A stretch of DNA of 64,000 bases from Andalucia godoyi And28 (lineage: Eukaryota > Protista > Jakobida), in contig VRVR01000040.1 in NCBI GenBank assembly GCA_009859145.1, positions 184,871 through 248,870 of the forward strand, written 5' to 3'. Each line of letters starts with the position of its first letter. The first letter of the stretch is position 1. Below, piece by piece: positions 11,201-33,995 of this stretch. The notes under the pieces were generated by a model, which worked only from the letters and a program-made list of their open reading frames with translations, had not been told where the DNA came from and did not search any database. The position numbers and the translations under genes are program-made.

Positions 11201-14200
11201 AGTTGATGATCAACACCAGCGCATTGTTCCGGACAGTAAAATCGGCAGCATCCACACATTTCATTAGGGACGATCCCAAAATCTGCGAAGCCCCGTGGTG
11301 TTCACAGAGCGAGACGATCCAATCGGAATCTGCATACACGGCAAGCAAATCAAACAGCATTGAGTGGTCCGCGGGTTTCTTGATACGAGAAAGCAACTCG
11401 GACGTCACAAGAGAAACGTACATCACGCATCGATCTACCCATTCTGTATTTTCCGAGACGAGAGACACCAAGTCCACGGACAGGAATAGCTGTGTATGAA
11501 GCCAGAAGTACCGGGAGGACAACAGAGGCTGAGAATCCGTTGCAGTTGCCAGAAACTGGAATGACCTGGTCAAGTATTCATCCAAGTGCTGAAACAAGGC
11601 AGAAACCACCATTTGCCGATCCTCCGTGGTCCTGATTAACGGTGATTCGCCTGCGAACAAAAACACAAGGACACGTTTGATCAATTCAAAGGCGATCCAG
11701 GAAGCATTCACGAGATATGTGCGTCGCGAGCGTTCAAACCGATCGCTGGAAACATAGTTCGTGAGATTCTTCAACAACATGCCCAACGACTGCGCTGCCT
11801 CATGGGCAATGACTTTCGGTTCTGACAAGTTCTTCGAAAGGAAACTCGGAGATATTTCTTTCTGAATGATCCAGTCTACAAAATAGTTCCTTATCCGGTT
11901 TTCTTTCAGCTGCAGATGAGAATCCACCCGACGACACAGTTCAACAAGTGCATCCACCGCATCAATGGACTCCGTTTGCATAAGTGTTTCACCAACGATG
12001 CGTTGGAACGCACAGGGGAGAAATCGAAAACAGTCCACGCAGTCTCGTGGGAACCTGGAGACCGCTCGAAAATCGGGACCTGAGATCAAGTCATTCACTG
12101 ACGCGTCCCAAGGACGCAGGGAGGATACATACCGCGTCGTGAGAGTAAAGACAGGTTTTCCGTTATCGCAAGGTTTGTAGATCTTCTGTGAATCGGCAGA
12201 CATGTATTCCTTGAGATCGACAACTCCATGTGGCACACCAAATACCGGTAGCTCATGCTTTCTGATTGGAGACACACCATGCATCACACAGTCGAGAGGC
12301 AAGAACGAATATCCTACCAGAACAAACGTATCCCCAGCATCCTTCTCCTTCTCCTTTTCCTTGGCTGTTTTGCACGCAACATGGTAAAAGAGGAACAGGA
12401 AGTGGGCCTTGTCCACTTCCGTATCTAGAGGAAGCGGCACATGAAATTCATCGGAAAAATCAGGTTTCTTCTCGTGATACATCACACTCGAGAATCTCGA
12501 TGCGTGCATCGCTGATCCGACAGACGAGCATTTGTCCGAATTCATGAGCAAACAACGAACGGAAATGTTTCGCGCAGAACCGGAGGCCGAACGACCATTC
12601 AGATTGACATTTTCCGGTGACACGAAAACCTCATGTCGCGGAACCTTCACAAGAGGAAGAACAAAATCGGTTTTGAGCTTCGTACCATCCGGCCACGGGT
12701 AATCGCCAACAGAAAACACTGGTCCGCCAAACGCCCCCGACTCCACGTATTCTGCGGTTACCGTGAACGGCAGCTTTGCAGGAAACACCTTGATGTCCTT
12801 CTGCTTGCGTAGCTGTTGAATCCCCACAGGACAGGGGGCTGGTGCCTCTCGCGAGACCGCATTGGTGAAGACGAGAACCGAGGAATTCGCGACCTCGGCA
12901 ACATTTGTCGAGGACAGCGAGGCAGAGGACGAAGAGGTCGACAGCAGGGACCCAGATTGGTTCCCATCTGCAGGTGGAATAATCATCTGCAGCAAACCGT
13001 CATCTGCTAAAGGACCATCGGAGGGATATCTAAAAAAGTCCGAAACAAACCCTTGGACGGTCTCCTTCGTGGGCAAGTTATCCGTCGCAGTCATGGGTAC
13101 GCTATTTGGGCTGCTGCCCGTCGAAGCATCCTTGTCCGATGAATTGGGCTGGATACTCGAGTACGGAATCAGGTCTGCAAGGCGAAACACAGCGAAGCAC
13201 ATGGCCATGCGAAACGCACCAAGGCGTTCCGACGAGTCTTTCCATGCAGCCTTCAGTTTTGCGACGTCGACCTTTTCGATTTTCTCCAGTTTCGAATACG
13301 GCTCAAGCACCACACTCGCTTCATCACCTTGCAGCGACTTGTACACGCGCATCACGACAAGGATGTCATCATACCTCGTGGACTGCCTCACTGCAAACTG
13401 ATGCGCATCCCCGTTGTCCATGGGATAGTACGGAGACAGCCGGATGCGCTTAGAACCATCGAACAACGCGACTTCACCCATAAATTTTTCCACCTCTCCG
13501 TCCTTGACAAGATTCTGTGCTTTCAATGCTTCAATAAGCAACGGTTCAAAGCTTTTGATGTTCATCTGCAGGTGCACAAGAATGAAGTCATCCCGAGGCG
13601 CAGGAAGATTGGAATTGCCACGCCCACAAAGCGAATTCGCCGTCGAGCCCGCCCACGCAAATTTTTGTCCTCTCGAAGCGTGGTACAGATCCATGAGCGA
13701 GAGCTCCGAGTCTGCTGCCACCATTCCCGGAACTGTGCGTTCGAGATCCGAGATCGTCCGCGGCTCGATCAGCGAAGTGTCAGCATCTTGAGTTCGAGGT
13801 GCTTCTGCAGGGACAGGACCCGGGGAAGACTCTTCCTGAAATACACCTTGTAGCGATCTTGTGGAGTTGTTCGATGCCGGTGTTGCATCCCCAGTCGGAG
13901 AGCCAGCAGCACCAGCACCAGCACTCAGTGCGGGCATGCCACCGTATCGATGACTGTTTCTATAGAAAGTAGTCACTGTCTCGGAGCGGTCAACCTGGAA
14001 AGCCTCTCCAGCAATGGCCGGATTCAGCGAAGCTTCGCGTGCCGTATAGACAGAGTTGCTTGAAAAGTGCTTCACGTCCCTCCCCATCCACTCCAGCTGC
14101 CCTCGGATCGTCGGTGAAAGATTTCTATGTCTCGACAGCAGATGCCGCGCATACGTCGACCCTTGTTCTTCCGATGGAAAACGAACTTCTTGGACATCCG

Positions 14201-14267
14201 ATGACGGAGCCGCAACCGGCTGCACATGCAAGTTGTACAGCTTAGACACCGAAGGAATCGCCGACAT
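8232..14267 (-). CDS. DOCK-family (DOCK-C/D-like) Rho GEF with C2/DHR1 and DHR2 domains
   Basis: DHR1: VMYHEKKPDFSDEFHVPLP, HFLFLFYHVACK. DHR2: YLGTYYRV, FESPFTK, EQWKRKTILTT, LQGSVRLTVHGG. Likely start ATG 14267 (MSAIPS); intronless. Confidence 0.93.
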   Translation of the reverse strand: MSAIPSVSKLYNLHVQPVAAPSSDVQEVRFPSEEQGSTYARHLLSRHRNLSPTIRGQLEWMGRDVKHFSSNSVYTAREASLNPAIAGEAFQVDRSETVTTFYRNSHRYGGMPALSAGAGAAGSPTGDATPASNNSTRSLQGVFQEESSPGPVPAEAPRTQDADTSLIEPRTISDLERTVPGMVAADSELSLMDLYHASRGQKFAWAGSTANSLCGRGNSNLPAPRDDFILVHLQMNIKSFEPLLIEALKAQNLVKDGEVEKFMGEVALFDGSKRIRLSPYYPMDNGDAHQFAVRQSTRYDDILVVMRVYKSLQGDEASVVLEPYSKLEKIEKVDVAKLKAAWKDSSERLGAFRMAMCFAVFRLADLIPYSSIQPNSSDKDASTGSSPNSVPMTATDNLPTKETVQGFVSDFFRYPSDGPLADDGLLQMIIPPADGNQSGSLLSTSSSSASLSSTNVAEVANSSVLVFTNAVSREAPAPCPVGIQQLRKQKDIKVFPAKLPFTVTAEYVESGAFGGPVFSVGDYPWPDGTKLKTDFVLPLVKVPRHEVFVSPENVNLNGRSASGSARNISVRCLLMNSDKCSSVGSAMHASRFSSVMYHEKKPDFSDEFHVPLPLDTEVDKAHFLFLFYHVACKTAKEKEKEKDAGDTFVLVGYSFLPLDCVMHGVSPIRKHELPVFGVPHGVVDLKEYMSADSQKIYKPCDNGKPVFTLTTRYVSSLRPWDASVNDLISGPDFRAVSRFPRDCVDCFRFLPCAFQRIVGETLMQTESIDAVDALVELCRRVDSHLQLKENRIRNYFVDWIIQKEISPSFLSKNLSEPKVIAHEAAQSLGMLLKNLTNYVSSDRFERSRRTYLVNASWIAFELIKRVLVFLFAGESPLIRTTEDRQMVVSALFQHLDEYLTRSFQFLATATDSQPLLSSRYFWLHTQLFLSVDLVSLVSENTEWVDRCVMYVSLVTSELLSRIKKPADHSMLFDLLAVYADSDWIVSLCEHHGASQILGSSLMKCVDAADFTVRNNALVLIINFLTKIRFDQRLASIASRNHVARLFVESILVPLMSQHASWKSAASSAYLAAKEKVKTSATDSPAGSSPVLVENADSPSQSTLSKEEEEARREEWQYLQEQRRFYLVVLHMFSELSVSARREVISSRLPLMTTIMHESISSVNYAGRAATEELIKTERKSGKTKESLESRYKDPLRAVSTRQDLASFKAKRAAGGTLGRKNGVSTAGSISAASGASTSRTFSISTAGGARGTGTWSAATGKESIRLGVSPVFSLDVGDSGDGALENLDGLISAMQVMSSYVCYVVVYLYLSDVLASPAVITTPSPSSPLSRFPPTPVSLSAEGLGGHARDSHFPVLCGILCHLLDSNLSDDANVHVMLACMSVLPPLPKVSRQLLHRMNHPSKPTQTHAAALLYVLLRAQRKDFSSLARHVSVQLSSLMFHCPEPIRYVSALCKADTRVTRDFRDAVFDIMDRLADVMKDSLQIHVLEQSAKDSGREQNMEELADCYASIAKSYGHAPELRATWLQHLSDLNLRHLCFAEAAMSLIHICHLVYPYVYPPRHSVRSVCDTNAERLFHVVAPDLMHIPVIQDCHFDMFTAEYFQQTALRAIDLLTKGDLFEHAIRMYEILLPIALSARDYSQLGDWYEQMAELANTIAEVQSKRYLGTYYRVIIANKEYVYKMPKITRLAEIKQYLESVLPPEFKEELKITVLSPYIPPPLPKQLDQDSENTPKTSGGGGGSGGGGGGLALSIPLPSPRSFGGQNGMRSRSGSAMNLLAHVEDRVTYFERNVNLKQFAFESPFTKNSGKSQAENVSEQWKRKTILTTEAFFPGIRTRLAVIRKNEVELNPLQNAIELIENRNEILTRVVRATKPDINALQLALQGSVRLTVHGGIPEIVKMFLRPLKSDAADVGNGPWNEYPAAEYDRLRTNLLTFFELCQEGVILDGNIVSEMQLPFHRELENGLEEVRVFLSLYLTHSALETSLRPQETYAVASPAVSTTSGDSFVLVSKN

Positions 14268-15088
14268 TCTCACTCTTCCCACTGCGCGACTTTCAAAAAA
14301 CAATCCCAAATCAAAGCCCCCTCCCCCCAAAAAAAAAGAGGAAAAGAACAATGCAAATAGCAATAAAACGATATAAATATGATAAACGTAAAAATAAAAC
14401 AAAACAAATTAATCAATTAAACAATATAAAAACACACAGCAAAAAGAAAGCACAACGCAATGCCTTCTTTTCTTCTTCCTGTTTTCCCGGCTTCCTTTGG
14501 TCTTGTCGGGACTGTAGGAGTCCTCCACGCAAAGAGAAGCGAAGTATAAGGAAAACTTTAAAAAGATATTAAGTTAAGGAACAAAGGATACTCCTAACAA
14601 AGAGAAGGAAAAGAAGAGAAAAACAAAAAGAAAACAAAAAAGACTAGATTAATATTATATAAAAAAAAGTGATGTGCGGCACTGCCGAGACACGAGGGTA
14701 TCGAGAGTGAGTTCCAAAGTCATGAGTTTTGAGAGGAAGAAGGGGGGGGGATCGAATGGGGAAAATAATATGAAAGAGGCAGGGATCACAAAACAAAACC
14801 ACAAAAACGAAACACCCCAACAGGAAATTAATAATAGTGCTTCTATAATCAGGAAATGAGAAGAAAACATTGTATCACGTGATGCTGCATCGTTTTTTTT
14901 AACTCGTTCTCCATCCGCAAAACTGTCCGCAGAGTTCCGCCGCTCCGCGTTTGTCTGCTACCGTTCGCTACAGTGCACAAAACGGTCAACCGCGGTTTTT
15001 CGGGGTTCGCGCGTGGCTGCAACGAACGAGATACAGGACAGATTCTGAGAGTAATCAAGTGTTGACGTAGGAAAGTGGGGTTGGATCC

Positions 15089-16381: not shown

Positions 16382-18328
16382 TCACCGCTTTCCTTCCACG
16401 GATAAATTCTTTGCACAACAGACGCGCATGGAGCGGCAGTAATCTGCAAGACGCGCGACTTCGATCTGAACCGCACGGCAGCTGCTCCCGAACTCTGCAT
16501 CCAGCGCAAACTCTGCAAACACGCCGCATTCGAGATGACGCAGGTACGTCGCAAGGACAACCGTCGTCAAGACCATTGCCCAGTGCTCACACAATTCCGC
16601 ATCCGCTACACTGCGATCGCCTGCCAGATCCTCGCGAACCTGGTTGAACGACGGAGAGGAATTGATCCGGTCCAGCACAAGCGGCAACATGTGCTGGAAT
16701 AATCGAGTCTGCTTGATTTCTCGAGAGAACTGTGCGCACCGTGACGCATTCTTTTCCACTCGAATAAGACCCAACACATCCGACGGTGCATAATCCACGA
16801 CCACGGCAGCCAGCATCGCCAGCGGGCTACTCTGTGACGCGACGCTTTGCGCCGCCGGTTCGTGGGACTGCGATTGAATTTGCTGGGATAGCTGCTGAGC
16901 TAGCTGAACTTGTTGAACTTGGGCATTCGCGCGTGCTCGCTGTACGGTTCTTATTTGCGCAGGCAGACCGCGATCCACAAAATCGACGACCTTTGCAACG
17001 CGCGAGTTGGCATTTTCGCAATAAATGTGCAGCGTCATATCTCTACTCTTGCATCCGTTTCCAAGTGCTAGTTTTTGCAGATCCATGTCCAAGGACGTAG
17101 CAGATCCAGAAGACGCGGTTCTCGACATGAGGAGTCCAAGTCCAGGTCCAGGTCCAGGTCCGGGTCCGGGTCCGGATGCGGGTGCCAGCCCGAGCAGTTG
17201 CTGGTTGTGTAGCAGTTGGTGTTCATGCTGGAGCTGTGCGGCCTCGAGATTTGGAGTGCTTGCGGACTGTCGAAACTCTGCAGCGCGTGCATGATCCATA
17301 ACCACCCCTTCGTACCCACCAAGAGAATCGACGGATTTTGAGCATAACGCATAGCCGCGAGGCATTTTCGACTTTGCATCGATAGGCTGCAGCGATTCGT
17401 AGAGCAAGTCAAGCGGAACCCAGTAAAACGGATATTTGAAGCTTGCGGATTCGAGCAAGAGCACGAGTTTCTTTTCCTTGTGGTATCCTGCGATTGGTGA
17501 AAAGTGTCCGTCGCCCGTCTGTCCCAGGCTTTTTCTGGAGACCGACACCACCATCATGACGTCTGGATTCGAAGTTGTAGTCATGATGTCTCTTTCGAAC
17601 TGTTCAATGGAGACCTCGTTTCCGATTCTCGTGGATATGTCGAGGCCAGTGCAGTGGCCAAGACATGCAAACTGCTGGAGCGTGACGCCCTCCTTGCGCA
17701 CGACATCGAGTGGCGAGCAGCAGTCGAGCATTTCTTCTGTGTACCACCTCCACGGATGCTTCCAGATGCGCATGGGGTCAATTGCAAACGCATTGAGCAC
17801 CATCACCAGCGACGACAGCCCGCAAAACGCGGGGTCCGACTGTGTGCGGAAGTTCTCTGCCAGCACAAAGTAGTTATTCATAAACTCCGACTGCAGCGCC
17901 TCTTTGAAAACAGCGCGGCCTGCCACCGATGCAAACGGCACGAGATTTGCCGGAAGTTGTCTCTTGTACAGGGACTGCGTCGGCGGAAGCGGCGGCGACA
18001 CGCCTGGCGGCGGAAACGCAGACTGCGATAGCACTCCGTTCGACAGCTCGTCAACAGCAGGCAGCGGCGCAGTCGTCGAACACGACGAGCATATCGAGTC
18101 CATTGACGAAAACCGAGTGTGCTTGCTCTGCGTAATCAAACAAGTCTTGGAACACGGATTGCTCTGCTTCCACTGCAACCCATCTCCATCTTCTCCATCT
18201 GCGGCTGTACTGCCCATCCACTCTCCTTCGTCCTCATGGTCACGCCCATGATCATGGTCAGAAACAACTCGATACGCACTTAACGACATCACACCTCCAT
18301 TACTACTATTGCTATTGTTAGTACTCAT
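16382..18328 (-). CDS. PCS: Phytochelatin synthase (gamma-glutamylcysteine dipeptidyl transpeptidase)-like, variant active site
   Basis: FRTQSDPAFCGLSSLVMVLNA (Cys), WKHPWRWYTEEMLDCC, QTGDGHFSPIAGY (His), LLESASFKYP (Glu at the Asp position). Confidence 0.92.
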   Translation of the reverse strand: MSTNNSNSSNGGVMSLSAYRVVSDHDHGRDHEDEGEWMGSTAADGEDGDGLQWKQSNPCSKTCLITQSKHTRFSSMDSICSSCSTTAPLPAVDELSNGVLSQSAFPPPGVSPPLPPTQSLYKRQLPANLVPFASVAGRAVFKEALQSEFMNNYFVLAENFRTQSDPAFCGLSSLVMVLNAFAIDPMRIWKHPWRWYTEEMLDCCSPLDVVRKEGVTLQQFACLGHCTGLDISTRIGNEVSIEQFERDIMTTTSNPDVMMVVSVSRKSLGQTGDGHFSPIAGYHKEKKLVLLLESASFKYPFYWVPLDLLYESLQPIDAKSKMPRGYALCSKSVDSLGGYEGVVMDHARAAEFRQSASTPNLEAAQLQHEHQLLHNQQLLGLAPASGPGPGPGPGPGLGLLMSRTASSGSATSLDMDLQKLALGNGCKSRDMTLHIYCENANSRVAKVVDFVDRGLPAQIRTVQRARANAQVQQVQLAQQLSQQIQSQSHEPAAQSVASQSSPLAMLAAVVVDYAPSDVLGLIRVEKNASRCAQFSREIKQTRLFQHMLPLVLDRINSSPSFNQVREDLAGDRSVADAELCEHWAMVLTTVVLATYLRHLECGVFAEFALDAEFGSSCRAVQIEVARLADYCRSMRVCCAKNLSVEGKR

Positions 18329-20382: not shown

Positions 20383-22035
20383 TCATAGAAGAAGAAGAGA
20401 GGGAATGGGGGCAGATCGGATGATTCTAAGTTCGGCGACGGCATCGATGAACGCAGGCCACCAATCGTCCTCATCGCCAACTCGGATCCACTTGCCTGGC
20501 GCGCACTTTTCGGCATATTCAACCTCGGCGGTCGAGTCCGCGGCTGCAATCCGGAACTTTGTCCGCAGCCCGCTCACAAGCTCCCGCACGCCGCTGTATC
20601 GATCGAGATTCACCTTGATACACTGCCCCGCATAGCTTGCTGTCACCACCTGCATCATCTCTCGGTTGCAGTTTTCATGATTCGCCCACAGACCGCCTGT
20701 CAGACCGAGACTGACGACCGAGACCGGCTCCTGATACAGCGTCGATGCAGGAGAGTGGATGGTTCCATCCGAGTCTTCTCCTCCTCCCACGCCATGTGCA
20801 TCCGAAACACCGTGTCCGTGCCCGTGCCCATGACGATGCACATGGCTGTTGCTAAGTGTCATTGGAATTGCAGATGTTGGAGAAGCGGACATGAGAGCAG
20901 GGTTACTAAAAGGAGATGGAAGCGAAGAAGAACAGCTGGTAGAAGTAGTAGTAGTAGTAGTAGAAGAAGAAGAAGAAGAAGAAGAAGAAGAAGAGGACGA
21001 GGTGGAAATAGACGGATGGGGAACCACGACCATGAAACGATCCATTTCACACTGCATGGATGCCGGAATCGCAGCGACATTCTGAGGCCGATTCACTTTT
21101 CGCAACTTCTTCACGGTCGCCTTGTCCACTGGCTCTCCGTTCTCACCCTTGTCATTCCCTCCGCCGATATCATCGATAGAACCCATGGCGGCAGCAGCAG
21201 CGCAATACGACGGCCTTACAAACCATCCTTTGACATCCTTGTCGAACACATCCTTCTTCTTCGAGATTAAGCACTGCCGTACGCTCTGCTCCGTCACACA
21301 TGCATAAATAAGTCCCGTGTGTGCCACGACACGCCCGCTGTACTCCTTCTCCACTGCCAGCGTCAATTCTCGGTACGAAAACCGCCGTTCACCCTTCTTT
21401 TCCTTGTCTGCGTTGTCCGCGCTGTCATGAGCCTGCGCGGAAGACATCATGATCGCCACAAGCGCCTCAAACAACAGCACCACAGGACCCGTCTCTGTCT
21501 TTTCACTCGGCATCCCAGAAGAAGTGAAAGCAGCGGTCGACAGAGGAAAAGTAGAAGTAGACGTAGACGAAGCAGCCGAAGTAACAGCAGCAGTCAGAGA
21601 TGTAGAATTCGTAGCAATACTTTGACCAGGAGCCACAGTCGTCGTTGGAGGAAGGTAGTTCCGGAAACCAACGTACTGGTGCATAACCATAGAAGGATAT
21701 CGAGAATTCGGATATCCACAGCTGAATGTCGCTCCACCCATCCGATTCCCATTCCCGCTCCCATTCGGGCTCGAAACAGTAGACGTCATCGACGAAACAC
21801 TCGGCGACAGAGCCGCGGGTTGTTGTTGAGAAAATGAATGTGAGAATGCGTGGCACGGCCGCTTAGGAGTCGGAGCAGCACAGTAGAATGATGATCCCGA
21901 GGAAGAGGAAGAGGAAGAGGAAGAGGAGGAGGAGGAGGAGGAGGAAGCAGAAGAAGCGAAGGAGTAGGTGGGAGAGGAAGCGGTTGGGGAAGGCCGCTTG
22001 AGAGTCGGTAGAGGTTGGACACACCGAAACGCCAT
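20383..22035 (-). CDS. Putative transcription regulator: forkhead-like winged helix plus C-terminal Aux/IAA-type PB1 domain
   Basis: wHTH-like segment at 21489-21205 (SYRELTLAVEKEY...EQSVRQCL...GWFVRP). PB1-like segment at 20655-20420 (IKVNLDRYSGVRELVSGLRTKF...Y...W-IRVGD...W..F...V.ELRII). Ser-rich linkers. Confidence 0.7.
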   Translation of the reverse strand: MAFRCVQPLPTLKRPSPTASSPTYSFASSASSSSSSSSSSSSSSSSGSSFYCAAPTPKRPCHAFSHSFSQQQPAALSPSVSSMTSTVSSPNGSGNGNRMGGATFSCGYPNSRYPSMVMHQYVGFRNYLPPTTTVAPGQSIATNSTSLTAAVTSAASSTSTSTFPLSTAAFTSSGMPSEKTETGPVVLLFEALVAIMMSSAQAHDSADNADKEKKGERRFSYRELTLAVEKEYSGRVVAHTGLIYACVTEQSVRQCLISKKKDVFDKDVKGWFVRPSYCAAAAAMGSIDDIGGGNDKGENGEPVDKATVKKLRKVNRPQNVAAIPASMQCEMDRFMVVVPHPSISTSSSSSSSSSSSSSTTTTTTSTSCSSSLPSPFSNPALMSASPTSAIPMTLSNSHVHRHGHGHGHGVSDAHGVGGGEDSDGTIHSPASTLYQEPVSVVSLGLTGGLWANHENCNREMMQVVTASYAGQCIKVNLDRYSGVRELVSGLRTKFRIAAADSTAEVEYAEKCAPGKWIRVGDEDDWWPAFIDAVAELRIIRSAPIPSLLLL

Positions 22036-22272
22036 TGTCGTCGTGGTGCGGTTAGACAGTTTGATACAGAGAGAGCGAGAGAGGAAGAGAGTTTTGGGGG
22101 GAGAAAGAAAGAAGGGAGGGGCGGAAAAAAGAAGCAGAAGAAGAAGAAAGAAAGAAGGAATAGAAAAGAAGAAGGAAAAGATTTGAACGGGAAATTAAAG
22201 GAAGGAAAACCGGTCACGTTTAATATGGAGTCATAGAGGGTTTTTAATGGAGGAGGTGATGGAAAAGATAGG

Positions 22273-22457
22273 TTGAATCTTTGGTTTGCTCGGTATGAAT
22301 CTGCTGTGAAATCTTCCGGCTGGATCCCTATTTGGAAACAATCTCTTTTGAATCTTTTCCTCCGTCCACCAAAAGATCGGTTTTCCCTGTTTTCCCTCCG
22401 CTTTTGGATCTTGGAGGGGCATTTTTGAATCTTTGTAAGGCACTTTTATTGGATCTT
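22273..22457. promoter_or_regulatory. Homotypic cluster of TTGRATCTT motifs upstream of the wHTH-PB1 gene
   Basis: Five exact TGRATCTT copies at 22274, 22349, 22405, 22426 and 22450, plus a near match at 22296, all in the same orientation. Confidence 0.5.
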
Positions 22458-23202
22458 TTTTTAAATGCATATTTTTTCATATTTAAAAGCACTGGCTGTA
22501 GAGCACAGACGCCTCGTTTCCGAAAGAAAGGAAAACCTTTTCTAAAAATTGTGCTCTCTGTTTGACCGTTTGACCGTTTGACCGTTTGATCCATATTCAT
22601 TTTTCCGCTCGCCAAAACATGAATCCTTATTGATCATCATCGGGTAAGCTGTCGCCGAAGACAGATCCGAGCCGCATGCTTTTTTTATTTCATATTTGAG
22701 GGGGGGGGGGCGAGCACCACTTCTTCAATGCAGATTGCTCTGCATCAAAAGGTCATCGCTTCTTTTTCGCTCTCCGCCTCCGATGAGAAAGGATCAACGG
22801 GTTTCTTGGGAGATGATTTGCTTTTTGATGAGATGCTTGCGGGTTCGATAATAAAAAAATCAAACAAACAGAAAGAAAAGAATGAAGAAATTCTAGACTT
22901 GACTACGGTAAGGAACATCGCGTCTCCAAAGGGTGAGATAAAACAGACTTACGATATGATCTCGTTTGTTTGATGTTCAAGGTTCATACACAAAAACGGT
23001 CAACCGTCCTTTTTCACTTCAGTTCCGCGGATTGGGTAGCGACGTGCAGCAAAGAAAGAAGCAGTGTTTCAATTGGCAGACATGTGCGCATGAGGCCATC
23101 GCGAGCAAGACCCTCATCACCGAGTTTTTTTTGTTTTTTTTGTGTAATTTAAAAAATTGATGTTTTAAAGTATTAATATGGTTTTATTAGACTGAAGTAA
23201 GG

Positions 23203-24402
23203 ATGCGATATTCCAAGGTGATTCTGCGGTTATTGCTGTCGACGTTTGCATCAAAGTTTGCGCTGTGTTCTGTTCTCTTTGTGTTTGTGATCCATGCATT
23301 CACGGCGTCGTCTCGAGATGCAGTCCTGTTTCTGTCGCCCTGGGTTGCGCTCTCTGCGACACGGCTGCCGTCTGTGTACTTGCCGTCACGAGGAGTCCTG
23401 GTCTCTGCTTCAGACTCGGAGAACGCAGTCGTGGCGATGTACCCGCCAGACTCTTTTTCTCCGTCGTTCACATCGGTGCTTGCCGAGCGTCTGAAATCCA
23501 ACATCCATGCAATGTGTGCCTCGGACGATGGTTCGCGCATTGCCGTCGTTTCGCTCCCGGAGTTCACAGTTTATGATGCTACCGACAGCCGATTTGCAGT
23601 CGTTCTCAGACATACAATGGTCAATCTGTCTGCTGCGATGATCCCGTCAAAGGCGACGTTTCGCAACAGGATCTGCGTCTGTTCGGTCGATGCAGCGTTG
23701 CAGAAGTTTAAAAACGAAGACCCAGGCGTCGTCGTCGTTGCGTGTCCGTCTACGCAGCTTTCGGTTGCCGTTGGGTTTTCCAACCGCATATGGTGGATGC
23801 ACTCCGAGCTGGTCGATCCTACGAATCCGGCGAGTGCGCATGTGCATTCGCGAAAGAAGGGCAGACAATTCCCGGTCCAGTACACACTTCCCTACCGCCC
23901 ACCGTGGACAGACAAGCTTTCCCTCACGTCCGATCTCGCAATCGAGCAAATTGACTTTTTTGCATACATTCGACACGTGTACTCGGGTGAACTGCTGGAC
24001 ATCAGGACGCTGCAACGAACTCCTGCCTCTGCACGCATGAACGAGTATTCGCAACGGCTGCGCAGCGACTTGGAAAACGGACTCGATCCATCGGGCGTCG
24101 CAAACATTGGGCCCGACAGCAAGATCAAGACGCGAGCCTGGTGGTCTCCGTTGCATTCGTACCGCGATGAAACCCAGGCTTCTCGATTGCTCCATGTGCC
24201 TGGATTTCCCCAGACATACGTGGCAGTCGGCGACCGGTTTCTCGTCGTCATCTCACAAGACTCGGCATTCCCAAGCGCGCTGCACATCACCGACGACATA
24301 CCGCTGCCCGCTTCCCCTATTGCACCACCGTACGTTCTGCACGGACGAATTATGATTCCCACCGCCCGAGGTCTATTTGGTCTCCATCCCGTCAAGCTGT
24401 GA
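23203..24402 (+). CDS. Hypothetical protein with N-terminal signal/anchor, beta-rich (propeller-like)
   Basis: 399-aa ORF with hydrophobic N-terminus; no family recognised. Confidence 0.7.
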   Translation: MRYSKVILRLLLSTFASKFALCSVLFVFVIHAFTASSRDAVLFLSPWVALSATRLPSVYLPSRGVLVSASDSENAVVAMYPPDSFSPSFTSVLAERLKSNIHAMCASDDGSRIAVVSLPEFTVYDATDSRFAVVLRHTMVNLSAAMIPSKATFRNRICVCSVDAALQKFKNEDPGVVVVACPSTQLSVAVGFSNRIWWMHSELVDPTNPASAHVHSRKKGRQFPVQYTLPYRPPWTDKLSLTSDLAIEQIDFFAYIRHVYSGELLDIRTLQRTPASARMNEYSQRLRSDLENGLDPSGVANIGPDSKIKTRAWWSPLHSYRDETQASRLLHVPGFPQTYVAVGDRFLVVISQDSAFPSALHITDDIPLPASPIAPPYVLHGRIMIPTARGLFGLHPVKL

Positions 24403-25576
24403 TCACATTCCCGCCTTTCCCCCCTTCCTTTTTAGACCGGCCGTTTTGTTCACCATGGTCTGTGTACCTTTGTGCTTTCTTCTTCTTCTTCTTCTTCTTC
24501 TTCTTCTTCTTCTTCTTCTTCTTCTTTGGTTGTACGTTATCATTGCAAGCAAACACAAATGTTGTTATTTTTTTGTCCGGAAGAAGAGTTGTTTCAACAA
24601 AAACAAGAGAAAACACGTTTCTCACGCTTGTCATTTGACCCGCCAACCCAAAAACGTCTGATGGACGGCTGTGATATCATCGGATAGTATGGCTGATGGT
24701 GTGCAGGTCGAGGCCCAGTGAGACACTGTCGACTATCAACAAGCGATTTCTTGTAATCGATGATGGGCGCTGATGCGGATTTATAAAGTCACTTTACTCC
24801 AAATAATCTGGTTTTTTGGGGGCGCAGCATATGCGAGCCAGATGTTTGGGAGAGGCTTCGGTTGGAGGGTAATACCTTCATGCCTTCTGTTTTTAGTTTT
24901 TTCGTCTGATAGTGTTCATTACTTTTTCTTCTCTTCTTTTTTGAGTTCCGCAAAAAGGATGAGATTTAAATAAGAGGCAGATATGCTTGCCGATATTTCT
25001 TCTGGTGAAATTGTTTTGGCGCGCTTTCTCCTTTCTTCCTTTCGTTTTTCACCGGCACACCAGTGGGAATGGTCAAAATGAATAAATTAAAAAACAATCC
25101 TCCATCGGAAAGCAACACCCAGCAAATTCGGATGCGCAGTTCGCGGATGGACATTCTCGCGCATGTCATTAGCGGTGGTCCAAATGGCGGACGAGACCGG
25201 CAAGAATACATGCTCTCTTATGGATAGGGAATTTCAGGGTAGCAAGGATTTAACGGCTGTTAAAACTGACCCCGTCCTGCGCGACCGCATCCAGAGTAGT
25301 AGAAATAGCGGGGAAAGGAGATAAATGAAGACAGACTAACTATCCGTTCGTGTATCAATTCACAAGTTGATTGTCATATGCTGCTTGTTCATGATTTGTT
25401 CGTACTATGCGGAGGTCGGCGCATTCGAAAACAAAGTGAACGCGCGCGAATAAGAAATAGTACCGTCCTAACTTTACATGCATATGGACAAACAACAACA
25501 ACGACAAGAAGAAGAAGAAGAGGAGGAGGAAGACGGAACGAATGAAGGAGTAAACCAAACACACTGGACACACAGT

Positions 25577-25954
25577 CTATCGAGAAAACGACGGAAAGAC
25601 TGCGAGGTTTTCGAGCTTTCCAAAAAACAATCGCAAAGTCTCGTCACCATCATCACCATCACCATCGCGATCACCATCGCGATCATCAGAGCCGCCATTC
25701 GAACGCCGGTTCACACTCCCGTACAAGGTCCTCTGGTCGACCGTCGAGCTGTCCGTTCGGCAGAGTCCTCGTTGGGTCGAGTAATCCGATCCAAACAACA
25801 ACGGGCGCACATTACCATGATTGTCGACGTTGATGTGGTTGATGGCGGCGGCGGAGGCGGCCACCTTTTTAGAGACCGCAGACGAAGCCGCAGCAGGAGA
25901 ACCCACTACAGCAGGAACACTGCTGGAAAGTCTATTCTGAATCTGAGGGACCAT
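25577..25954 (-). CDS. Hypothetical low-complexity protein
   Basis: GC-rich ORF from ATG 25954 between spacers. Confidence 0.5.
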   Translation of the reverse strand: MVPQIQNRLSSSVPAVVGSPAAASSAVSKKVAASAAAINHINVDNHGNVRPLLFGSDYSTQRGLCRTDSSTVDQRTLYGSVNRRSNGGSDDRDGDRDGDGDDGDETLRLFFGKLENLAVFPSFSR

Positions 25955-26506
25955 GGATGATGTCGGTGTGTTTGAGGTTCTCTGCTTGTCGCAAGGATGC
26001 ATTTCGGAAGAACAGAACGAAAAAGAGAACAAAAGGGAAGAAAGGATGGTTAAAAAGAATGGAGCGGAATTCCCCGATGTTGAAGCTCATGAGGGCTCAA
26101 GTGACTCATCTCGGCTCTGTGAATATGAAAGAATGTGAAGCATACAGAAAAGCCCCGGTCGCCCCAGGAAAAAAGAAAAAAGAACCCACTGTAGTGCATG
26201 CAGGCAAAGGCAGCCGTGGCCTTGACGCACGCAGACCTTTCCCTTTCTTCTTTCCTCTCTTCCTTTCCTCTCTTCCTTACCCCTTCTTTCCTTAACCCCC
26301 TTCTTCCCTCTCCTTCTTTCTTCTTTTTCCAAAGTTAGAACTACTAAATATATAGTGTGTGTCTTTTTCTTTCCCTCTACCTCTGTCTCTTACGTGTTCT
26401 GTGATCCGGATTGCACACCAGGGGAGAAGAAGTTGACCAACGATTACAGCTGCTGAGACTGCCAGGACTAAAACTGCGGCGAGTATCGTTCTTTTTTCCG
26501 AGAGCA

Positions 26507-27094
26507 ATGACGACGACGATGCCTGCAGAGGCACCGGTCAAGGTGTTTTCCGAGTGCTCGATTCAGGATGCATCGGAGAATACAGTGTCGGTGACCTCGC
26601 TGCTGACCGATTCTGGAAAGCCGACTGCCGTTGCGCTTGTTCGCCATTTAGGATGAAATATCTGCCTCGCATTTCTTGCAAAATGCAATGCCCGCCACCA
26701 AGAGTTCATTGATCGTGGACTCAATTTCTTTGCTGTTGCACCCTCCAAGGCATCCCACGTGAAGGGGTATCTCGAGGATGAGCCAGACACAAAAATCAAG
26801 TTGTATGCGGATCCAGACAAGTGCATGTTCAAAGCCCTGGATCTCAAACGCGGATTTTTCGCTACCATGTTTTCAAAAGCAGGCTTCAAGGCGTACGGAG
26901 ACGCCAAGAAGGACGGCTTCAAGGCAAAGGGCCTCTATGGAGACGCACTCCAACTCCCAGGATTCTTAATTTCGTCCAAAGGCGGATCAGAATTTGTCTT
27001 TTATCACCGCGGCGAAAGCTCGGGCGACCACGGCGACCTGGACGGCATCTTTGCTGCATACGACGAGTATGCAAAGAACCAAAGCTCCGCATAA
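26507..27094 (+). CDS. AhpC/TSA-2 (PRXL2/SelU-like) thioredoxin-fold selenoprotein, 195 aa with Sec50
   Basis: The ORFs at 26411 and 26759 share a frame. Reading through TGA 26654-26656 gives VALVRHLG-U-NIC (UxxC) ... LYADPDKCMFKALDLKRG ... QLPGFL ... YHRGESSGDH. Confidence 0.88.
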
Positions 27095-27109
27095 TCGTTG
27101 TCTGTTGTC

Positions 27110-27156
<47 letters not shown>

Positions 27157-27361
27157 CTTCTTTTCCTGACAAGCGGGAAATGCATCCAGTTGCCATACGT
27201 CGTTGTGTGTGCTTGTATGCATATCTTTTGGATCTGGGATTAAGGACTTCGGGTTATTTGGGATTTGGTTTGGAGTTGGTGAGGATGGATCCATGAGCGT
27301 AGTTTCGAATCACAGAGAAGACGCGGTCTGCTTTTGCTCGAGTTTCTTCTGTGTGTTCTGT

Positions 27362-27407
27362 ACGACGTCTGCAGCGAAAATCGTGATCGAGGGCTGCACT
27401 GACTGAA
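27362..27407 (+). promoter_or_regulatory. Candidate type II SECIS element with non-canonical ACGA core
   Basis: ACGA + 11 nt + AAAA + UCG-UGAU-CGA minihelix + GCUGCA...GAC + UGAA. UGCAGC/GCUGCA and GUC/GAC pair. Confidence 0.55.
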
Positions 27408-28106
27408 CCGACTGTGTTTTCTTCTGTTGTTGAAAAAGAGCCGATCCACGTGGATGCACAAGAGAAATGACATCTGTGGCGGGTGTCTTGTGCAACCAGT
27501 TGGATAATATTTTTTTCTTCTCTCCGGCATTCTTCAATGGAAAAGAAAACACCTTCGAAAACGCAATGGATCCTTCCACTAGCTCTGAAATCATTTCAAT
27601 TATGCCCGTCTTTCTTTCCCATCCTTTCTTCATTAATTAATTTTAATGATGAATAACTTAAATAAAATACACCACAAAAACCCATAACCAACAAAACAAC
27701 AAGCTAGTCCTTTTGTTTTTCTTGTTTTTCCTGTCGAAGGAAGTGCCCCCTGCATTACTAATATATATATGTGTGTGTATAATATTTTTTTGTGCGGGCC
27801 ACAAAAGCGAGATAAGAGCAGCACCCCAGAGAACTCCGCAGAGCTGGGAATCGTCCCAGTTTGGAAAAAGGCCGGAATCTCTATTCTCCAATGCAGAAAT
27901 ATCGCCGCTCTGGACTTTCTTGAGAATCCAGACTTCCACTTTATTCCAATTGTTGTTGTTCCGCTTTTACTTTCAGCTTTCCTTATTGTTTTAAACTTTT
28001 TTGCGGTTTGATTAACACTATAGTAGGAGAACGGTGAGCAAAAAAGAAAAAAAAGAAAAAGAAAAAAAAGAAAAAAGGATATTAATTAATTACAACAATT
28101 AAAACA

Positions 28107-28667
28107 ATGTCAGTGGGTATGTGGGTTGTGTGCGCCGTGCTTTTGGTTACGGCGGCTCTGGCGTCTGCGGCGGGGTCGCTGACGAAGCTGAATATCGAGG
28201 CAAACTCGGTGACGGTGTCTGGCATATCGGCCGGTGCGTTTTCTGCGGTACAGTTCCACGTTGCGTATTCGAAGCTTGTGAAGGGTGCTGGTGTGGTTGC
28301 CGGTGGTCCGTTCTATTGTGCACAGGGACAAGTCACGACGGCTCTTACCACCTGCATGGCGGCGCCGGCGATGATCAACGTCGCATCGCTCGAGTCTGCG
28401 GCAAAAGACATGGCAAAGCGTGGTGCGATTGACCCGATCGAGAACATCAAGGGCGCGCCCGTCTTTATCTTTTCGGGTTCTTCAGATACCGTTGTTCAGC
28501 CAGGAGTCGTCAAGGCTAATGCAAAGTGGTACACTGACATGGGCGCAGACGTCCAGACTGAATTTTCCGTATGCCTTCCTCTCTCGCTCTCTCGCTCTCT
28601 CTTTGTCTCTCCCATTCGTCGTTTACTTGGTTTCTCATTACTCATATCGTATCATGCATGTTTCTTG

Positions 28668-28759
<92 letters not shown>

Positions 28760-29317
28760 GTGTGTGTCTCTTTTCTGATTCCGGATTAGATCAATGCGCA
28801 ACATTCGCAAGTGACAAACGACTACGGATCAACTTGCCAGTACCTTGGAAAGCCGTTTGTGAACAACTGCAACTTCGACGCAGCAGGCGCAATCTTGAAT
28901 CATGTTTACGGAACTCTGGGCCGTGGATCGCTGGTGGAGGCCAATCTCAAGACGTTTGACCAGTCGACGTACTTCCCGACATACATCGGACTGAACGGTC
29001 TTGGAAGAACCGGATACATCTATATCCCAACTGCATGCTCCCAGGGCGAGTCATGCAAGCTGCACTTTGCGCTGCATGGATGCTCCATGCGGTACTCAGA
29101 CATTGGTGATGCATACGTCTTGCACGGAGGATACAACCAATGGGCAGAAGCTTCCAACATCGTGGTCGTCTATCCCCAGTTCGAAGCAAACATGCTCAAG
29201 TCAAACCCGAATGCCTGCTCAGACTGGTTCGGAACCACCGGGTCAAACTATGCAGAAAAGGGCGGCGTCCAGAACGAGTTCTTCCGAAACATCGTCACCG
29301 CCCTCGCCGGGTTCTAA
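28107..29317 (+). CDS. Secreted PHB-depolymerase-like alpha/beta hydrolase (join 28107-28568, 28790-29317)
   Basis: Signal peptide, VTVSGISAG (GxSxG), AGGPFYCA, SDTVV, AQHS, NNCNFDAAGAILNHVYG, LHFALHGC, NIVVVYPQ, NPNACSDW. A phase-0 GT-AG intron joins the two ORFs in frame. Confidence 0.88.
28569..28789 (+). other. Spliceosomal intron (221 nt) containing a long (CT)n tract
   Basis: GTATGC donor, CTGAT branch-like motif at 28775, TTAG acceptor; removal restores the reading frame. Confidence 0.85.
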
Positions 29318-29600
29318 CCTTTTTTTTTTTTTGTTGAATTATTTATTTATTTTAAATCCCCGTCTCGTATCCCGCCTCTTTCCCTTTTGTTTTATTCATA
29401 CTATTATCATTATGATGATGATTGCTTTTTATTTGTTATTCTTGTCACTGGTTTTATTTTGTTTCTTGTTTCTTGTTTTATTGTTTTGCGTTGTCGTATT
29501 CTGCTACTGCTTGTTGTTGTTCTTTCTTTCCTGCTGTAGTTAGTGGACTACGACTCACAGCTCTCCTTTCTCCTTTCTCTTCCTTTCTCTTTCCTTTCTC

Positions 29601-29660
29601 CTTTCTCTTCCTTTCTCTTCCTTTCTCTTCCTTTCTCTTCCTTTCTCTTCCTTTCTCTTC
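29601..29660. repeat. (CTTTCTCTTC)6 tandem repeat
   Basis: Read directly from sequence. Confidence 0.9.
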
Positions 29661-29753
29661 CTCTCTTCTCCTCTCTTCCTCTCTTCTCCTCTTTTTTCTT
29701 TTTGTTGTCGGATTTATATCTCCCGTTGTTCTGATTCTTGTTTGTGTGCGTGA

Positions 29754-32030
29754 ATGTTTCGATTATTGAGGGCGCATGGTATCCAGAGTCATGTGCGGAT
29801 AGCAAAGGAGTCGCTCTCTATGTTTTCTGCACCGACGAAACGTGTCGACTCTGTGTTGCTTGTTTCGCGCTCCTTTGCGTCTTTTCTTGGTGGACAAGAT
29901 GCACGATTGAAGAGCTCAGAGGCGCTTGCAAACATGTTTCCAGATAACAGTGCGCAGCAAGCTCGCTATTTGAAGCAACTGCGGTCGGTCGATCCAGAGT
30001 CGGTAGTCAAGCGGTATGAATCGCTCAAGTACGCATCTTCGGCGGATGCATATCAAGAGTATCTGCTGGCATGCGGTGCTTTGGGAATGCTGAATAGGGC
30101 GATTCCAGACTATGGGAGCAATACGTCGGTCTCGAAGCTCACAAGCAGCAGCCACATGAACTATCCGGGAAATGTCGCTACTGCGCAGAACCCAATGATG
30201 ATCGGCAGCAATCCTGCCGCGTTCTCATATCCGCCTCCACCTGCCCCTTCTTTCCAGCAGCAGCAGTATCCATATTCATCATCGCAACAGCCAGTTCAGC
30301 AAAATCAACATCCACAAATGCAAATGAATATGAATCCTGCTGCTGGATATCCGACGTTCACAGCGAACTTTGCGGGTAGCGGCGGAAACCCGCCGAATGT
30401 GCCGGAAGTCGATTTCAGCAAGCCAATCAATGTTGTGTTGGCGGAACCGTCGACGTCATCACAGTTCTGGAGGACAATCAAGATGGCGGTTACGGGAATC
30501 ATTCTTGTTTCTGCAATGGGCGTTTTTGTGGAAGATCGTGCGGGGCTGTCGCGGAACATGTCGTTCAATCCAGAAGCCAACGCACACAAGCCAGTGGATG
30601 TCCGTTTCGAGGATGTAAAGGGATGTGATGAGTGCAAGAGCGAGGTCATCGAGGTTGTGGACTTCCTCAGAGATCCTGCAAAGTTTACGAGGCTCGGCGG
30701 AAAGCTGCCCAAGGGGTTGTTGCTCGTGGGGCCGCCTGGCACGGGAAAGACGCTGTTGGCGAAGGCGATCGCAGGAGAGGCAGGAGTTCCTTTCTTGTAT
30801 GTCTCGGGTTCGGAGTTTGAGGAGATGTTTGTTGGAGTTGGTGCCAAACGGGTGCGCGAATTGTTCGCGGCTGCAAAGAAGTTTGCACCTTGCATTGTGT
30901 TTATTGATGAAATCGACGCAGTGGGAGCAACAAGAAACCCGCGCGATCAGCAGCACTTGCGAATGACGCTCAACCAGCTTTTGGCCGAAATGGACGGATT
31001 CAACTCGCAGGAAGGGATCATCGTCATTGGAGCGACCAACTTTGCGCAGGCGTTGGACAAGGCCTTGATTCGTCCGGGTCGATTTGACCGAACGGTTGTC
31101 GTTCCTGCACCCGATGTCAAAGGCAGAGAAGAAATTCTCAAAGTGCATTTCGAGAAGAACAAGGTCCCGCGCGATGCGACTGTCAACTTACAGATGCTTG
31201 CAAGAAATACCCCTGGTTTCTGCGGAGCGGATCTTGCGAATCTGGTCAACATTGCAGCATTGCGCGCTGCACTGAAGAACAAACAGGCGGTTTCCGTGGA
31301 GGAAATCGAGTTTGCCCGAGACCGGATCCTCATGGGCATTGAAAGAAGCTCTTTTAAGCAGTCTCCAGAAGCAAAGCGTCTGACTGCGTATCATGAAGGC
31401 GGACATGCGCTGGTCGCTCTCTTGACCGAGGGTGCTTCTCCGATTCACAAGGCAACCATTGTTCCTCGTGGCCAGGCCCTGGGAATGGTGCAGCAAGTTC
31501 CAAAAGAAGGAGAAGGAGAAGGATACACTCGCAAGCAGATGAGGGCAATGGTGGATGTCTGCATGGGTGGACGTGTTGCGGAGGAACTCATTTTTGGCCG
31601 CGATGAAATTACTACGGGTGCATCATCTGACATTGAGCAGGCGACCCGCATTGCCCGAGAAATGATTACTAGATACGGGATGAGTGACCTGCTAGGTCCT
31701 GTGGATTACGCCCAGAAGGAAGGTTCTGTAATCTCGGAGGAGACCAGGAAGCAGATCGAGGTTGAAGTGCGCGAGATGGTCGCGCAATCCTATGAACGAG
31801 TCCGGAGATTGCTCAAGTCGAATGAAAAGGACCTGCATTCAGTGGCGAAAACATTGCTAGACAGGGAAACTTTGACGGGCGTCGAGATCATGAACCTCGT
31901 CCAAAAGGGACCGCATTACATTGCTTCAAACACAGCAAAACTTGGCTCGGTCCGCGACGCACCGACTGCTCCCCCGGCTGCTCCTGCGAAGCCAGCGCAA
32001 AAGGCAAAATCCAAACTCTTAGAGGCCTAA
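29754..32030 (+). CDS. YME1: Mitochondrial i-AAA protease (FtsH/YME1)
   Basis: Presequence-like N-terminus, single [31 protein letters not shown] zinc motif. Confidence 0.92.
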
Positions 32031-32192
32031 TTGTAAAATGCAACAACTCGACGAACAATCAAGCCAAACAGGAAAAAAGCCTCCACCACGGGAAGAACAT
32101 CTTTGTGGCTATACGCGTGTTTCTTCTTCTTCTTCTTCTTCTTGTTGTTGTTGTTGTTGTTGTTGTTATTATTATTGTTGTTGTTGCTGCTG

Positions 32193-32903
32193 TTAAAGAC
32201 CGATACCTGTGTAGTGGTACCGTATCATGTCCGTCGGGTACCTCCAGAGACGGAGCTGCTCAGTGGAGCTCAAATCATCTCTGACCTTCACCCATTGATT
32301 CCAGTCCGCTCCCTCCGAAATCATTCGTCGAATCAACGCACCATCCACTGTCGGTCGCGATTCTCTTGACGCTTCAAATGCGCTTGCCTCTCTCTCCACT
32401 TCCTGCGACAGTTCCGGATCGTCCGACACGGAGACATCCGGAAACACAACCAATGCGCGCATTGCCCACCACGAGCCGAACGACGGATGCCATGACAGCC
32501 AAGCAGTTTCCACAAAATGCGCCAACCGTGCTTGGTGGGCAAGGCGCAGGAAGTCCAGTCTGGTGTCACTGTGCATGTCGTACACCCACCGGACAGCGGC
32601 AGTGGAGCTGTCTTGGAGACCGACTGCGTGTGCAGCAGCACGCACTTCGTCGAGCGCATCCTGGATGGAGCTACAGCAGTACTCGTCGACTGGGTTGCGG
32701 GACCTTTTCGCTCGCGCGTACTCTGCAAACGACGGCCATGCAGACTTTGTGTTTCCGATTAAGAAACACAGCGCATCGCTCTTGGACACGGACGGGAAGT
32801 TCGGCAACCGTACCCAGTTCGCTGGAAACGCATGGCACACATCCAGTTTGCAGTCCACTTGGAGCTTGCGTCGGAAAATCTGTAGCAAGGTTGACCCAGA
32901 CAT
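32193..32903 (-). CDS. MMACHC: MMACHC/CblC-like cobalamin-processing protein
   Basis: LIGNTKSAW, NPVDEY, LAHQARLAHF, HPSFGSWWAMRALVVF, IRYHYT. Confidence 0.8.
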   Translation of the reverse strand: MSGSTLLQIFRRKLQVDCKLDVCHAFPANWVRLPNFPSVSKSDALCFLIGNTKSAWPSFAEYARAKRSRNPVDEYCCSSIQDALDEVRAAAHAVGLQDSSTAAVRWVYDMHSDTRLDFLRLAHQARLAHFVETAWLSWHPSFGSWWAMRALVVFPDVSVSDDPELSQEVEREASAFEASRESRPTVDGALIRRMISEGADWNQWVKVRDDLSSTEQLRLWRYPTDMIRYHYTGIGL

Positions 32904-33056
32904 GTCGCCGACACTCGTTTCTTTTTATACTCGCGCGGCTGCACAGTGCACGTTGCGGTTGCAGTTGCCCCGAGGTTTCACCAAATTGCTCTCGTGCGAG
33001 CTTGGGCGGGGTAGCGGATGGGTCTCTCCAAAACAACTGCACTCTCTATACTCTGT

Positions 33057-33175
33057 AGGTACGGCCATACTAGAGTGAAAATACCGCATCCCGTCCGATT
33101 TGCGAAGTCAAGTGCTCTCAGGCTGGAGTAGTACTGAGGTGGGTGACCACTCGGGAATTCCCAGTGCTGTACTTT
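33057..33175 (+). rRNA. 5S: Cytosolic 5S rRNA, single dispersed copy
   Basis: GTACGGCCATAC...CCGTCCGAT...GAAGTCAAG...AGTAGTACTG...GACC...GGGAAT...GTGCTGTAC, followed by a T6 Pol III terminator. The 5' end is uncertain by 1-2 nt. Confidence 0.97.
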
Positions 33176-33990: not shown

Positions 33991-33995
33991 CTTCG

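Follow-up and report, generated by a model that had tools for sequence, protein, structure and literature searches.

The locus considered here raises the question of whether a protein of the jakobid Andalucia godoyi carries a PB1 domain of the same lineage as plant auxin response factors (ARFs) and, if so, to what kind of domain this PB1 is joined. The gene is located on the minus strand, at positions 20383..22035 of a 64,000-nucleotide stretch (hereafter, the window) that corresponds to positions 184,871 to 248,870 of contig VRVR01000040.1 (assembly GCA_009859145.1); the VRVR accession prefix denotes the draft nuclear genome of A. godoyi (PMC7050145). The original prediction, made from the DNA sequence without database searches, ascribed to the encoded protein an ARF-like architecture outside plants, with a forkhead-like winged helix fused to an Aux/IAA-type PB1 domain. 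The best explanation of the results described below, to which we assign a probability of about 0.6, is that the gene product is a modular regulator, probably nuclear, composed of a disordered N-terminus, a new winged-helix-like domain, a basic patch, a linker motif, a spacer and a PB1 domain of the Aux/IAA-ARF type.

The C-terminal PB1 domain

The A. godoyi protein is rich in serine (18% of the 550 residues) and contains long low-complexity runs, which accounts for the failure of a Pfam scan with the full-length sequence to detect any family and for the lack of matches in a word-indexed search with the entire sequence. A word-indexed search with the C-terminus was likewise empty. The top PDB match of the full-length protein, a Euglena complex I subunit, is spurious and driven by an HG repeat. 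Because low complexity dominated the full-length scans, the protein was split into segments for the searches. When the C-terminal 104 residues alone were used as the query against 177,635 distinct PDB sequences, the top four matches were all PB1 domains of Aux/IAA or ARF proteins, namely PsIAA4 (E=0.0078, query positions 24-96), IAA17 (E=0.22 and 0.31) and ARF7 (E=0.37).

When 1.84 billion representative proteins were scanned exhaustively with phmmer, three matches were obtained, P0005 (E=1.7e-22), P0007 (E=3.3e-5) and P0006, the last of which was discarded as a translation of a tandem repeat. P0005, a protein of 415 residues encoded on contig Ga0456364_0007634 of JGI metagenome 3300042934, is the only match in this collection with the same two-domain layout. 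The order of the domains is the same as in the A. godoyi protein (a putative binding domain, a low-complexity middle and a C-terminal PB1), and the similarity extends over both the central domain (E=7e-29, 41% identity) and the C-terminal domain (E=8e-8, or 1e-8 in a comparison restricted to the domains). P0007 (360 residues, from two Logan assemblies, SRR5185872 and SRR5185879; L003 and L004) contains two tandem copies of the central domain, each followed by a KRK-rich patch, and a Cys-rich N-terminus (CxxC...CxxC), and is devoid of a PB1; its coding sequence is AT-rich and probably represents a transcript. Profile-based searching of 5.8 billion proteins brought up no members beyond P0005 and P0007, and scans of metagenome contigs (two) and viral contigs (one) added none.

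With a two-sequence profile that combined the C-terminal domains of the A. godoyi protein and P0005, the PDB search retrieved PsIAA4 with E=1.3e-8, IAA17 with 1.1e-7 and 9.1e-7, ARF7 with 6.7e-5 and ARF5 with 0.27, and no animal, fungal or NBR1-type PB1 structures at E<=10. The C-terminus of P0005 alone matched PsIAA4 in the same way (E=4.8e-5), and no PB1 structure from outside plants reached E<=10. On the Pfam profile AUX_IAA (PF02309, gathering threshold 22.7 bits), the P0005 segment scored 43.5 bits (E=4.1e-11) over profile positions 98-212, that is, the PB1 part, and gave no match to PF00564 at E<=10. Among the controls, PsIAA4 and a PB1 fragment of ARF7 (both taken from the search outputs) scored 135.6 and 39.9 bits on AUX_IAA, respectively, with PF00564 reaching just E ~0.15, so P0005 scores on this profile like a genuine ARF PB1; the PB1 domains of p62, aPKC, Par6 and NBR1 (entered by hand) matched PF00564 only, at 49-64 bits.

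The match to the plant PB1 domains spans the whole domain, from β1 to β5. When the domains were aligned jointly, PsIAA4 shared 30-33% identity with the protist domains and 35% with ARF7; the identity is 30% between the A. godoyi domain and PsIAA4 over 76 aligned residues and also 30% between the two protist domains. Among the positions retained in the A. godoyi domain are K474, W516, VGD 519-521, W526, F529 and LRI 536-538. We conclude that, as judged by sequence comparison, the C-terminal domain (residues 460-542; 20410..20658, minus strand) is homologous to the PB1 of the Aux/IAA-ARF subtype, with the A. godoyi copy degenerate and more divergent than that of P0005. The resemblance to Aux/IAA and ARF proteins that had been recognized by eye in the original prediction is thus borne out by the PDB searches, and the behavior of P0005 on the Pfam profiles, set against that of the generic PB1 controls, assigns the domain to this particular subtype.

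Alternatively, there could be no shared subtype ancestry, the domain being a fast-evolving generic PB1, or another β-grasp domain, that converged on the W...VGD..W..F...RI pattern. Indeed, this is a short domain, its A. godoyi copy is marginal when taken alone (E=0.0078 in the PDB search and a score under the Pfam cut-off), and protist PB1 domains have been placed unreliably in published PB1 trees (PMC7051960). We nevertheless regard convergence as unlikely, given that the similarity is not confined to the C-terminal motif, that the identity to PsIAA4 is near that between ARF7 and PsIAA4, that no non-plant PB1 structure reaches E<=10, and that P0005 behaves as the ARF fragment does, with none of the four generic PB1 domains ever touching AUX_IAA.

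The homo-oligomerization and hetero-oligomerization mediated by PB1 domains involve two faces, one with a Lys and the other with the OPCA motif. In the A. godoyi domain, the β1 Lys (part of VKV in PsIAA4 and IAA17) is replaced by Thr465; it is kept in P0005 (AVKVFVEG). The original prediction correctly noted the loss of this Lys but took the replacing residue to be Gln; in an alignment anchored on the conserved Gly, Gln462 lies three residues upstream of the β1 Lys position. The three Asp positions of the OPCA motif (D-x-D-G-D) are occupied by C511, P513 and K515 in A. godoyi, in agreement with the predicted alteration of the OPCA acids, and by D, D and R in P0005, where two of the three acids are kept. 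The third of these positions is basic in both protist domains, and both possess an extra acidic cluster before the second conserved Trp (DEDD 521-524 in A. godoyi and DDDE in P0005). P0005 represents the less derived state of the PB1 pair, and by its residues resembles type I/II PB1 domains; because the β1 Lys is present along with two of the three OPCA acids, front-to-back pairing seems plausible for this protein. The two proteins thus offer a natural experiment on the role of a PB1 without its canonical electrostatic faces, with both faces lost in A. godoyi versus the Lys and two of the three acids kept in P0005.

The central winged-helix-like domain

The best-conserved part of the family is not the PB1 but the central segment, residues 183-285 of the A. 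godoyi protein (21181..21489, minus strand), which is shared with both P0005 and P0007. The residues that are invariant across the four copies of this domain include L188, M196, L224, Y232, G234, G241, Y244, V247, S251, C255, K259, K260, F264, K266, G270 and W271. An AlphaFold2 model of this segment built with a four-sequence alignment reached a predicted local distance difference test score (pLDDT) of 83-90 in the core and comprises H1 (188-205), H2 (221-232), a hairpin (236-244), H3 (249-258) and two wing strands (264-267 and 270-273). In the model, the order of the elements is that of a winged helix (H-H-H-β-β), and they fall where the original prediction had placed them.

The best 50 matches of the modeled domain in a Foldseek search of the PDB are mostly winged-helix proteins, among them the Pol III subunit C34, the Dcc1 module, PrfA, MarR, PadR, IclR, LysR, CggR and ESCRT-II; no forkhead is present among these 50 matches listed. 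None of the family domains matched PF00250 or PF05066 in Pfam at E<=10 (all four domains were searched with PF05066), and PDB searches with the central domain, both by sequence and by profile, were empty. In hhalign comparisons, the central domain matched forkhead with a probability of 1.6% (P=0.032, with five forkhead domains), HARE-HTH with 0.6% and H1/H5 with 0.4%; these comparisons, made with reference sequences entered by hand, have low power, given that forkhead against H5 itself yields just 11.5% with the same small alignments. Hence the description of this segment as forkhead-like, as proposed originally, finds no support beyond the generic topology, and the other family that had been brought into consideration, HARE-HTH, fares no better. 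Below the Pfam threshold, three of the four family domains showed similarity to PF07508 (Recombinase, found in large serine recombinases) with E-values from 0.003 to 0.09, and RPN13_C was also hit. Neither identity was accepted: the scores are below threshold and the similarity involves a short motif, W/F-T/S-x-x-E-L....N.P.Y.G, that covers the start of H2 and the adjoining loop (residues 221-232, region 21340-21375), so that the resemblance to PF07508 probably reflects a shared local motif. The central domain, of approximately 100 residues, is best described, on the basis of the model, as a new winged-helix-like family, defined here by three proteins with four domain copies.

Winged helices with basic residues in H3 and the wing commonly bind DNA. 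There are also winged helices that serve as protein modules, such as those of cullins, ESCRT-II, Pol III C34 and Dcc1, and the A. godoyi protein could accordingly be an adaptor or scaffold in which the winged helix is a protein-protein module and the PB1 links it to a signaling or trafficking complex, comparable to p62, NBR1 or the algal AUX_IAA proteins linked to Sec16. Several of the best Foldseek matches are indeed protein-binding (Pol III C34, Ctf18-Dcc1-Ctf8, ESCRT-II and UFL1/DDRGK1), no DNA-binding family was detected by sequence, and the only reported partner of the Pfam domain AUX_IAA outside streptophytes is Sec16 (PMC13069868). However, most of the Foldseek matches are DNA-binding winged helices, bacterial or eukaryotic (MarR, PadR, IclR, PrfA, CggR and LysR); K259, K260 and K266, in H3 and the wing, are invariant; a basic cluster resembling a nuclear localization signal follows every copy of the domain; and P0007 joins two copies to a zinc-finger-like, Cys-rich N-terminus. 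We consider the scaffold function possible but distinctly less probable than a role of the protein as a nuclear regulator.

The linker and a model of the protein

The region between the two domains contains several short conserved elements. Every copy of the central domain has a basic patch after the wing (KKLRK in A. godoyi, KKRKRG and SKRRKK in P0007), with K309 invariant; in the A. godoyi protein, it is embedded in the segment KATVKKLRKV (residues 305-314; 21094..21123, minus strand), and it is plausible as a nuclear localization signal. Immediately downstream, the linker motif PQNVAAIPASMQCEMD (residues 317-332; 21040..21087, minus strand) aligns with PQNVACIPEAMQLNMD in P0005, with the shared pattern PQNVA(A/C)IPxxMQxxMD, and the linkers compared alone give a pairwise E=3.9e-7. 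Across both domains and this motif, the identity with P0005 is 30-49%, and insertions and deletions are confined to the low-complexity spacers.

The spacer that follows (residues 341-440; 20716..21015, minus strand) contains poly-Ser/Thr and HGHGHGHG and is not kept in P0005. The poly-Ser/Thr run itself (20800-21010, residues 343-410) is encoded mainly by TCT codons, with HGHGHGHG after it, and the opposite strand of this region reads as poly-Glu/Arg open reading frames. At the other end of the protein, the N-terminal low-complexity region (residues 1-182; 21490..22035, minus strand) is rich in Ser, Thr, Pro and Ala, contains a poly-Ser run and is probably disordered. This region showed no significant similarity to the N-terminus of P0005 (best E=0.98), and a candidate motif common to the two, YLPPT/FLPPT, was accordingly not significant.

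Between the spacer and the PB1 lies VSLGLTG (residues 441-447; 20695..20715, minus strand), which is weakly similar to the EAR motif (LxLxL) by which domain I of Aux/IAA proteins recruits TOPLESS. VSLGL (441-445) is the sole [LIVMF]xLxL motif of the A. godoyi protein, of the form ΦxLxL rather than LxLxL; the sole such motif in P0005, IHLGLGS, is likewise located in the linker. Given that [LIVMF]xLGL occurs by chance in 1.7-2.0% of shuffled proteins, a conserved EAR-like ΦxLGL motif in the linker is a suggestive reading of the two sequences, far from proof. Inspection of the A. godoyi sequence revealed no GWPPV/GWPP degron (domain II), as had been noted originally, and neither the full protein nor the central segment matched B3 or Auxin_resp in Pfam at E<=10. 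By its domain content, the A. godoyi protein is neither an ARF (no B3 or DD/AD) nor an Aux/IAA protein (no degron).

Taken together, these features can be accommodated in a model in which the winged helix would use H3 and the wing, which contain the invariant K259, K260 and K266, to bind DNA or chromatin, and the PB1 would bring together copies of the protein or recruit a partner, and thus set the oligomeric state or the choice of the partner. With both faces altered, the A. godoyi PB1 is unlikely to assemble into the canonical electrostatic polymer. Because both canonical faces are lost, its interactions are probably non-canonical or heterotypic, if it acts at all; the contact might involve the shifted acidic cluster DEDD 521-524.

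A number of observations weigh against this interpretation. The loss of both canonical faces weakens the claim that the A. godoyi protein itself oligomerizes through its PB1. On AUX_IAA, its C-terminus scored just 12.1 bits (E=0.16), under the cut-off of 22.7 bits, so that the anticipated match to PF02309 was obtained for P0005 and not for the A. godoyi domain itself. An AlphaFold2 model of the PB1 built from two sequences is unreliable (pLDDT 39.8) because the alignment is too shallow, and its Foldseek matches are noise; a ubiquitin-like β-grasp is predicted from sequence homology together with the order of the secondary structure elements in this poor model, ββαββαβ, which is that of the β-grasp. 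Foldseek detected no significant match of the central domain in the PDB (best E=0.19, TM score ~0.3), no sequence profile ties this domain to any DNA-binding family in Pfam, the PDB or the hhalign comparisons, and many winged helices bind proteins, not DNA. Finally, with just two or three known members of the family, the conservation statistics are thin.

Genomic setting and comparison with known systems

The gene is real and conserved. In the open reading frame listing of the window, it is an uninterrupted ATG-to-stop frame of 550 codons plus the stop in a single exon, in which both domains are collinear with those of P0005 and all the peptides quoted in the original prediction are present, and the NCBI record of the contig (274,769 bp) calls the same 550-residue gene, without Pfam annotation. 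That the frame is open merely by chance, within low-complexity sequence, could be suspected from the 18% Ser content and the long homopolymer runs, the long overlapping open reading frames on the opposite strand, and the absence of the exact sequence from the large protein collection searched. This possibility is effectively rejected by the conservation of two domains and the linker motif with P0005, with insertions and deletions only in the low-complexity spacers, and by the presence of the gene in the NCBI annotation.

The neighbors of the gene in the window are ordinary eukaryotic, apparently intronless genes, which encode a cathepsin B-like protease, a DOCK-family guanine nucleotide exchange factor, a phytochelatin synthase and FtsH; the window contains no second PB1-like or winged-helix-like open reading frame. 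The phytochelatin synthase homolog (16382-18328, minus strand) is 648 residues long, and its Pfam domain covers only residues 121-326, with long N-terminal and C-terminal extensions. The DOCK-family protein (8232-14402, minus strand; 2056 residues) contains a DOCK-C2 domain and DHR-2 lobes A, B and C; as listed, its frame starts at TTG, and the true start is probably an internal ATG. Along the plus strand, AT skew is positive over 1-22000, a stretch in which the long open reading frames are mostly on the minus strand, and becomes mostly negative over 22001-40000, where the plus strand carries them. The sign changes within 22036-23202, the interval that separates the divergently oriented winged-helix/PB1 gene and open reading frame 23203..24402, and it follows that the coding strands have more T than A.

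The latter open reading frame (P0004; plus strand, 399 residues, no Pfam family) adjoins the winged-helix/PB1 gene, and its homolog (E=3e-7), a 405-residue open reading frame at 2132-3349 of the minus strand, adjoins P0005 on contig L002 (9,149 bp, 50% GC, compact genes). The adjacency is common to both genomes, with a different relative orientation. This shared neighbor suggests an old gene adjacency and, for the P0005 contig, an origin from a relative of A. godoyi. The same observation bears on the possibility that the PB1 module, or the whole gene, was horizontally transferred from a green-lineage organism. In favor of a transfer are the very patchy distribution of the family, with just two PB1-bearing members in 1.84e9 representatives and two metagenome scans, and the fact that the subtype is otherwise regarded as streptophyte-born (PMC11685440, PMC5873896). 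Against it stand, apart from the shared adjacency, the normal chromosomal context and host-like composition of the gene and the lack of a plant homolog of the winged-helix partner domain in the exhaustive search; furthermore, the identity of 30% between the protist PB1 domains, and to the plant ones, implies that any transfer would be old. Transfer appears to us slightly less likely even than convergence of the PB1.

PB1 domains occur across eukaryotes, and many protist PB1 proteins with large flanks of unknown nature have been seen in single species, where they were left unclassified and placed unreliably in trees (PMC7051960). The A. godoyi gene fits the description of the protozoan PB1 proteins of Mutte and Weijers 2020 (PMC7051960) and goes beyond that set in two respects: the flank is a conserved domain family, and the PB1 can be assigned to AUX_IAA by Pfam through P0005. 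The PB1 clade of ARF, Aux/IAA and RAV proteins has been placed in the streptophyte ancestor, with chlorophyte Phox-like PB1 domains as the nearest outgroup (PMC11685440, PMC5873896), and before streptophytes, AUX_IAA was reported only together with Sec16 (PMC13069868). Against this background, the combination of an AUX_IAA-type PB1 with a winged helix is a new architecture, and its occurrence in Discoba is unexpected.

The jakobid family provides a non-plant comparison point for rooting and re-testing the ARF/Aux-IAA/RAV PB1 clade, and it bears on whether the pairing of a nucleic-acid-binding domain with an Aux/IAA-type PB1 arose more than once. It can be proposed, very tentatively and with the odds against it, that the Aux/IAA-ARF-RAV PB1 subtype predates plants and that Discoba carry such a PB1 fused to a DNA-binding winged helix and a linker with the EAR-like ΦxLGL motif. 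If so, the module of a transcription factor, a PB1 and a repression motif would be an ancient eukaryotic design, patchily retained and later wired to auxin by plants, and not a streptophyte invention. Auxin signaling components are not expected in A. godoyi itself.

The closest known counterparts of the C-terminal domain are the plant Aux/IAA-ARF PB1 domains (2M1M, PsIAA4; 2MUK and 6L5K, IAA17; 4NJ6, ARF7; 6L5K, ARF5), to which the sequence homology extends over the whole domain. The shared features are the RK(V/I)(D/N)(L/V) strand, the long variable loop that follows helix 1, the signature G-x-W-(M/I)-x-V-G-D...W..F...(L/M)RI, and the C-terminal position after a low-complexity middle. The differences are the jakobid rather than streptophyte host, the basic residue (K/R) at the third OPCA Asp position and the extra acidic cluster of the protist copies; unlike Aux/IAA proteins, the A. 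godoyi protein lacks the domain II degron. The central domain, in turn, shares in its model with winged helices such as forkhead, HARE-HTH, linker histone H1/H5 and MarR/PadR/IclR the order H1, short strand, H2, H3 and β-hairpin wing, and displays a hydrophobic H1 (LLFEALVAIM), a start of H2 with the pattern W/F-T/S-x-x-E-L, a polar and basic H3, and a wing with F.K...GW. It differs from all of these in the presence of a conserved hairpin of 12-15 residues, Y.GRVV.HTG.IY, between H2 and H3.

At the level of the whole protein, the comparison is with ARF (B3+DD/AD+MR+PB1), the algal and bryophyte RAV proteins (AP2+B3+PB1) and NLP (RWP-RK+PB1), which follow the same design of a nucleic-acid-binding domain, a disordered middle and a C-terminal PB1 by which the oligomeric state or the choice of partner is set. 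Unlike in these proteins, the binding domain predicted in A. godoyi is winged-helix-like, with no relationship to B3, AP2 or RWP-RK, and DD/AD (Auxin_resp) is missing. Thus, the layout implied by the term "ARF-like architecture" in the original prediction is conserved in P0005 and stands, but membership among the ARFs does not, since neither B3 nor Auxin_resp is present. The likeness to ARF is best viewed as an analogy of design, in which a binding domain, a disordered middle and a PB1 are arranged in the same order, and not as orthology.

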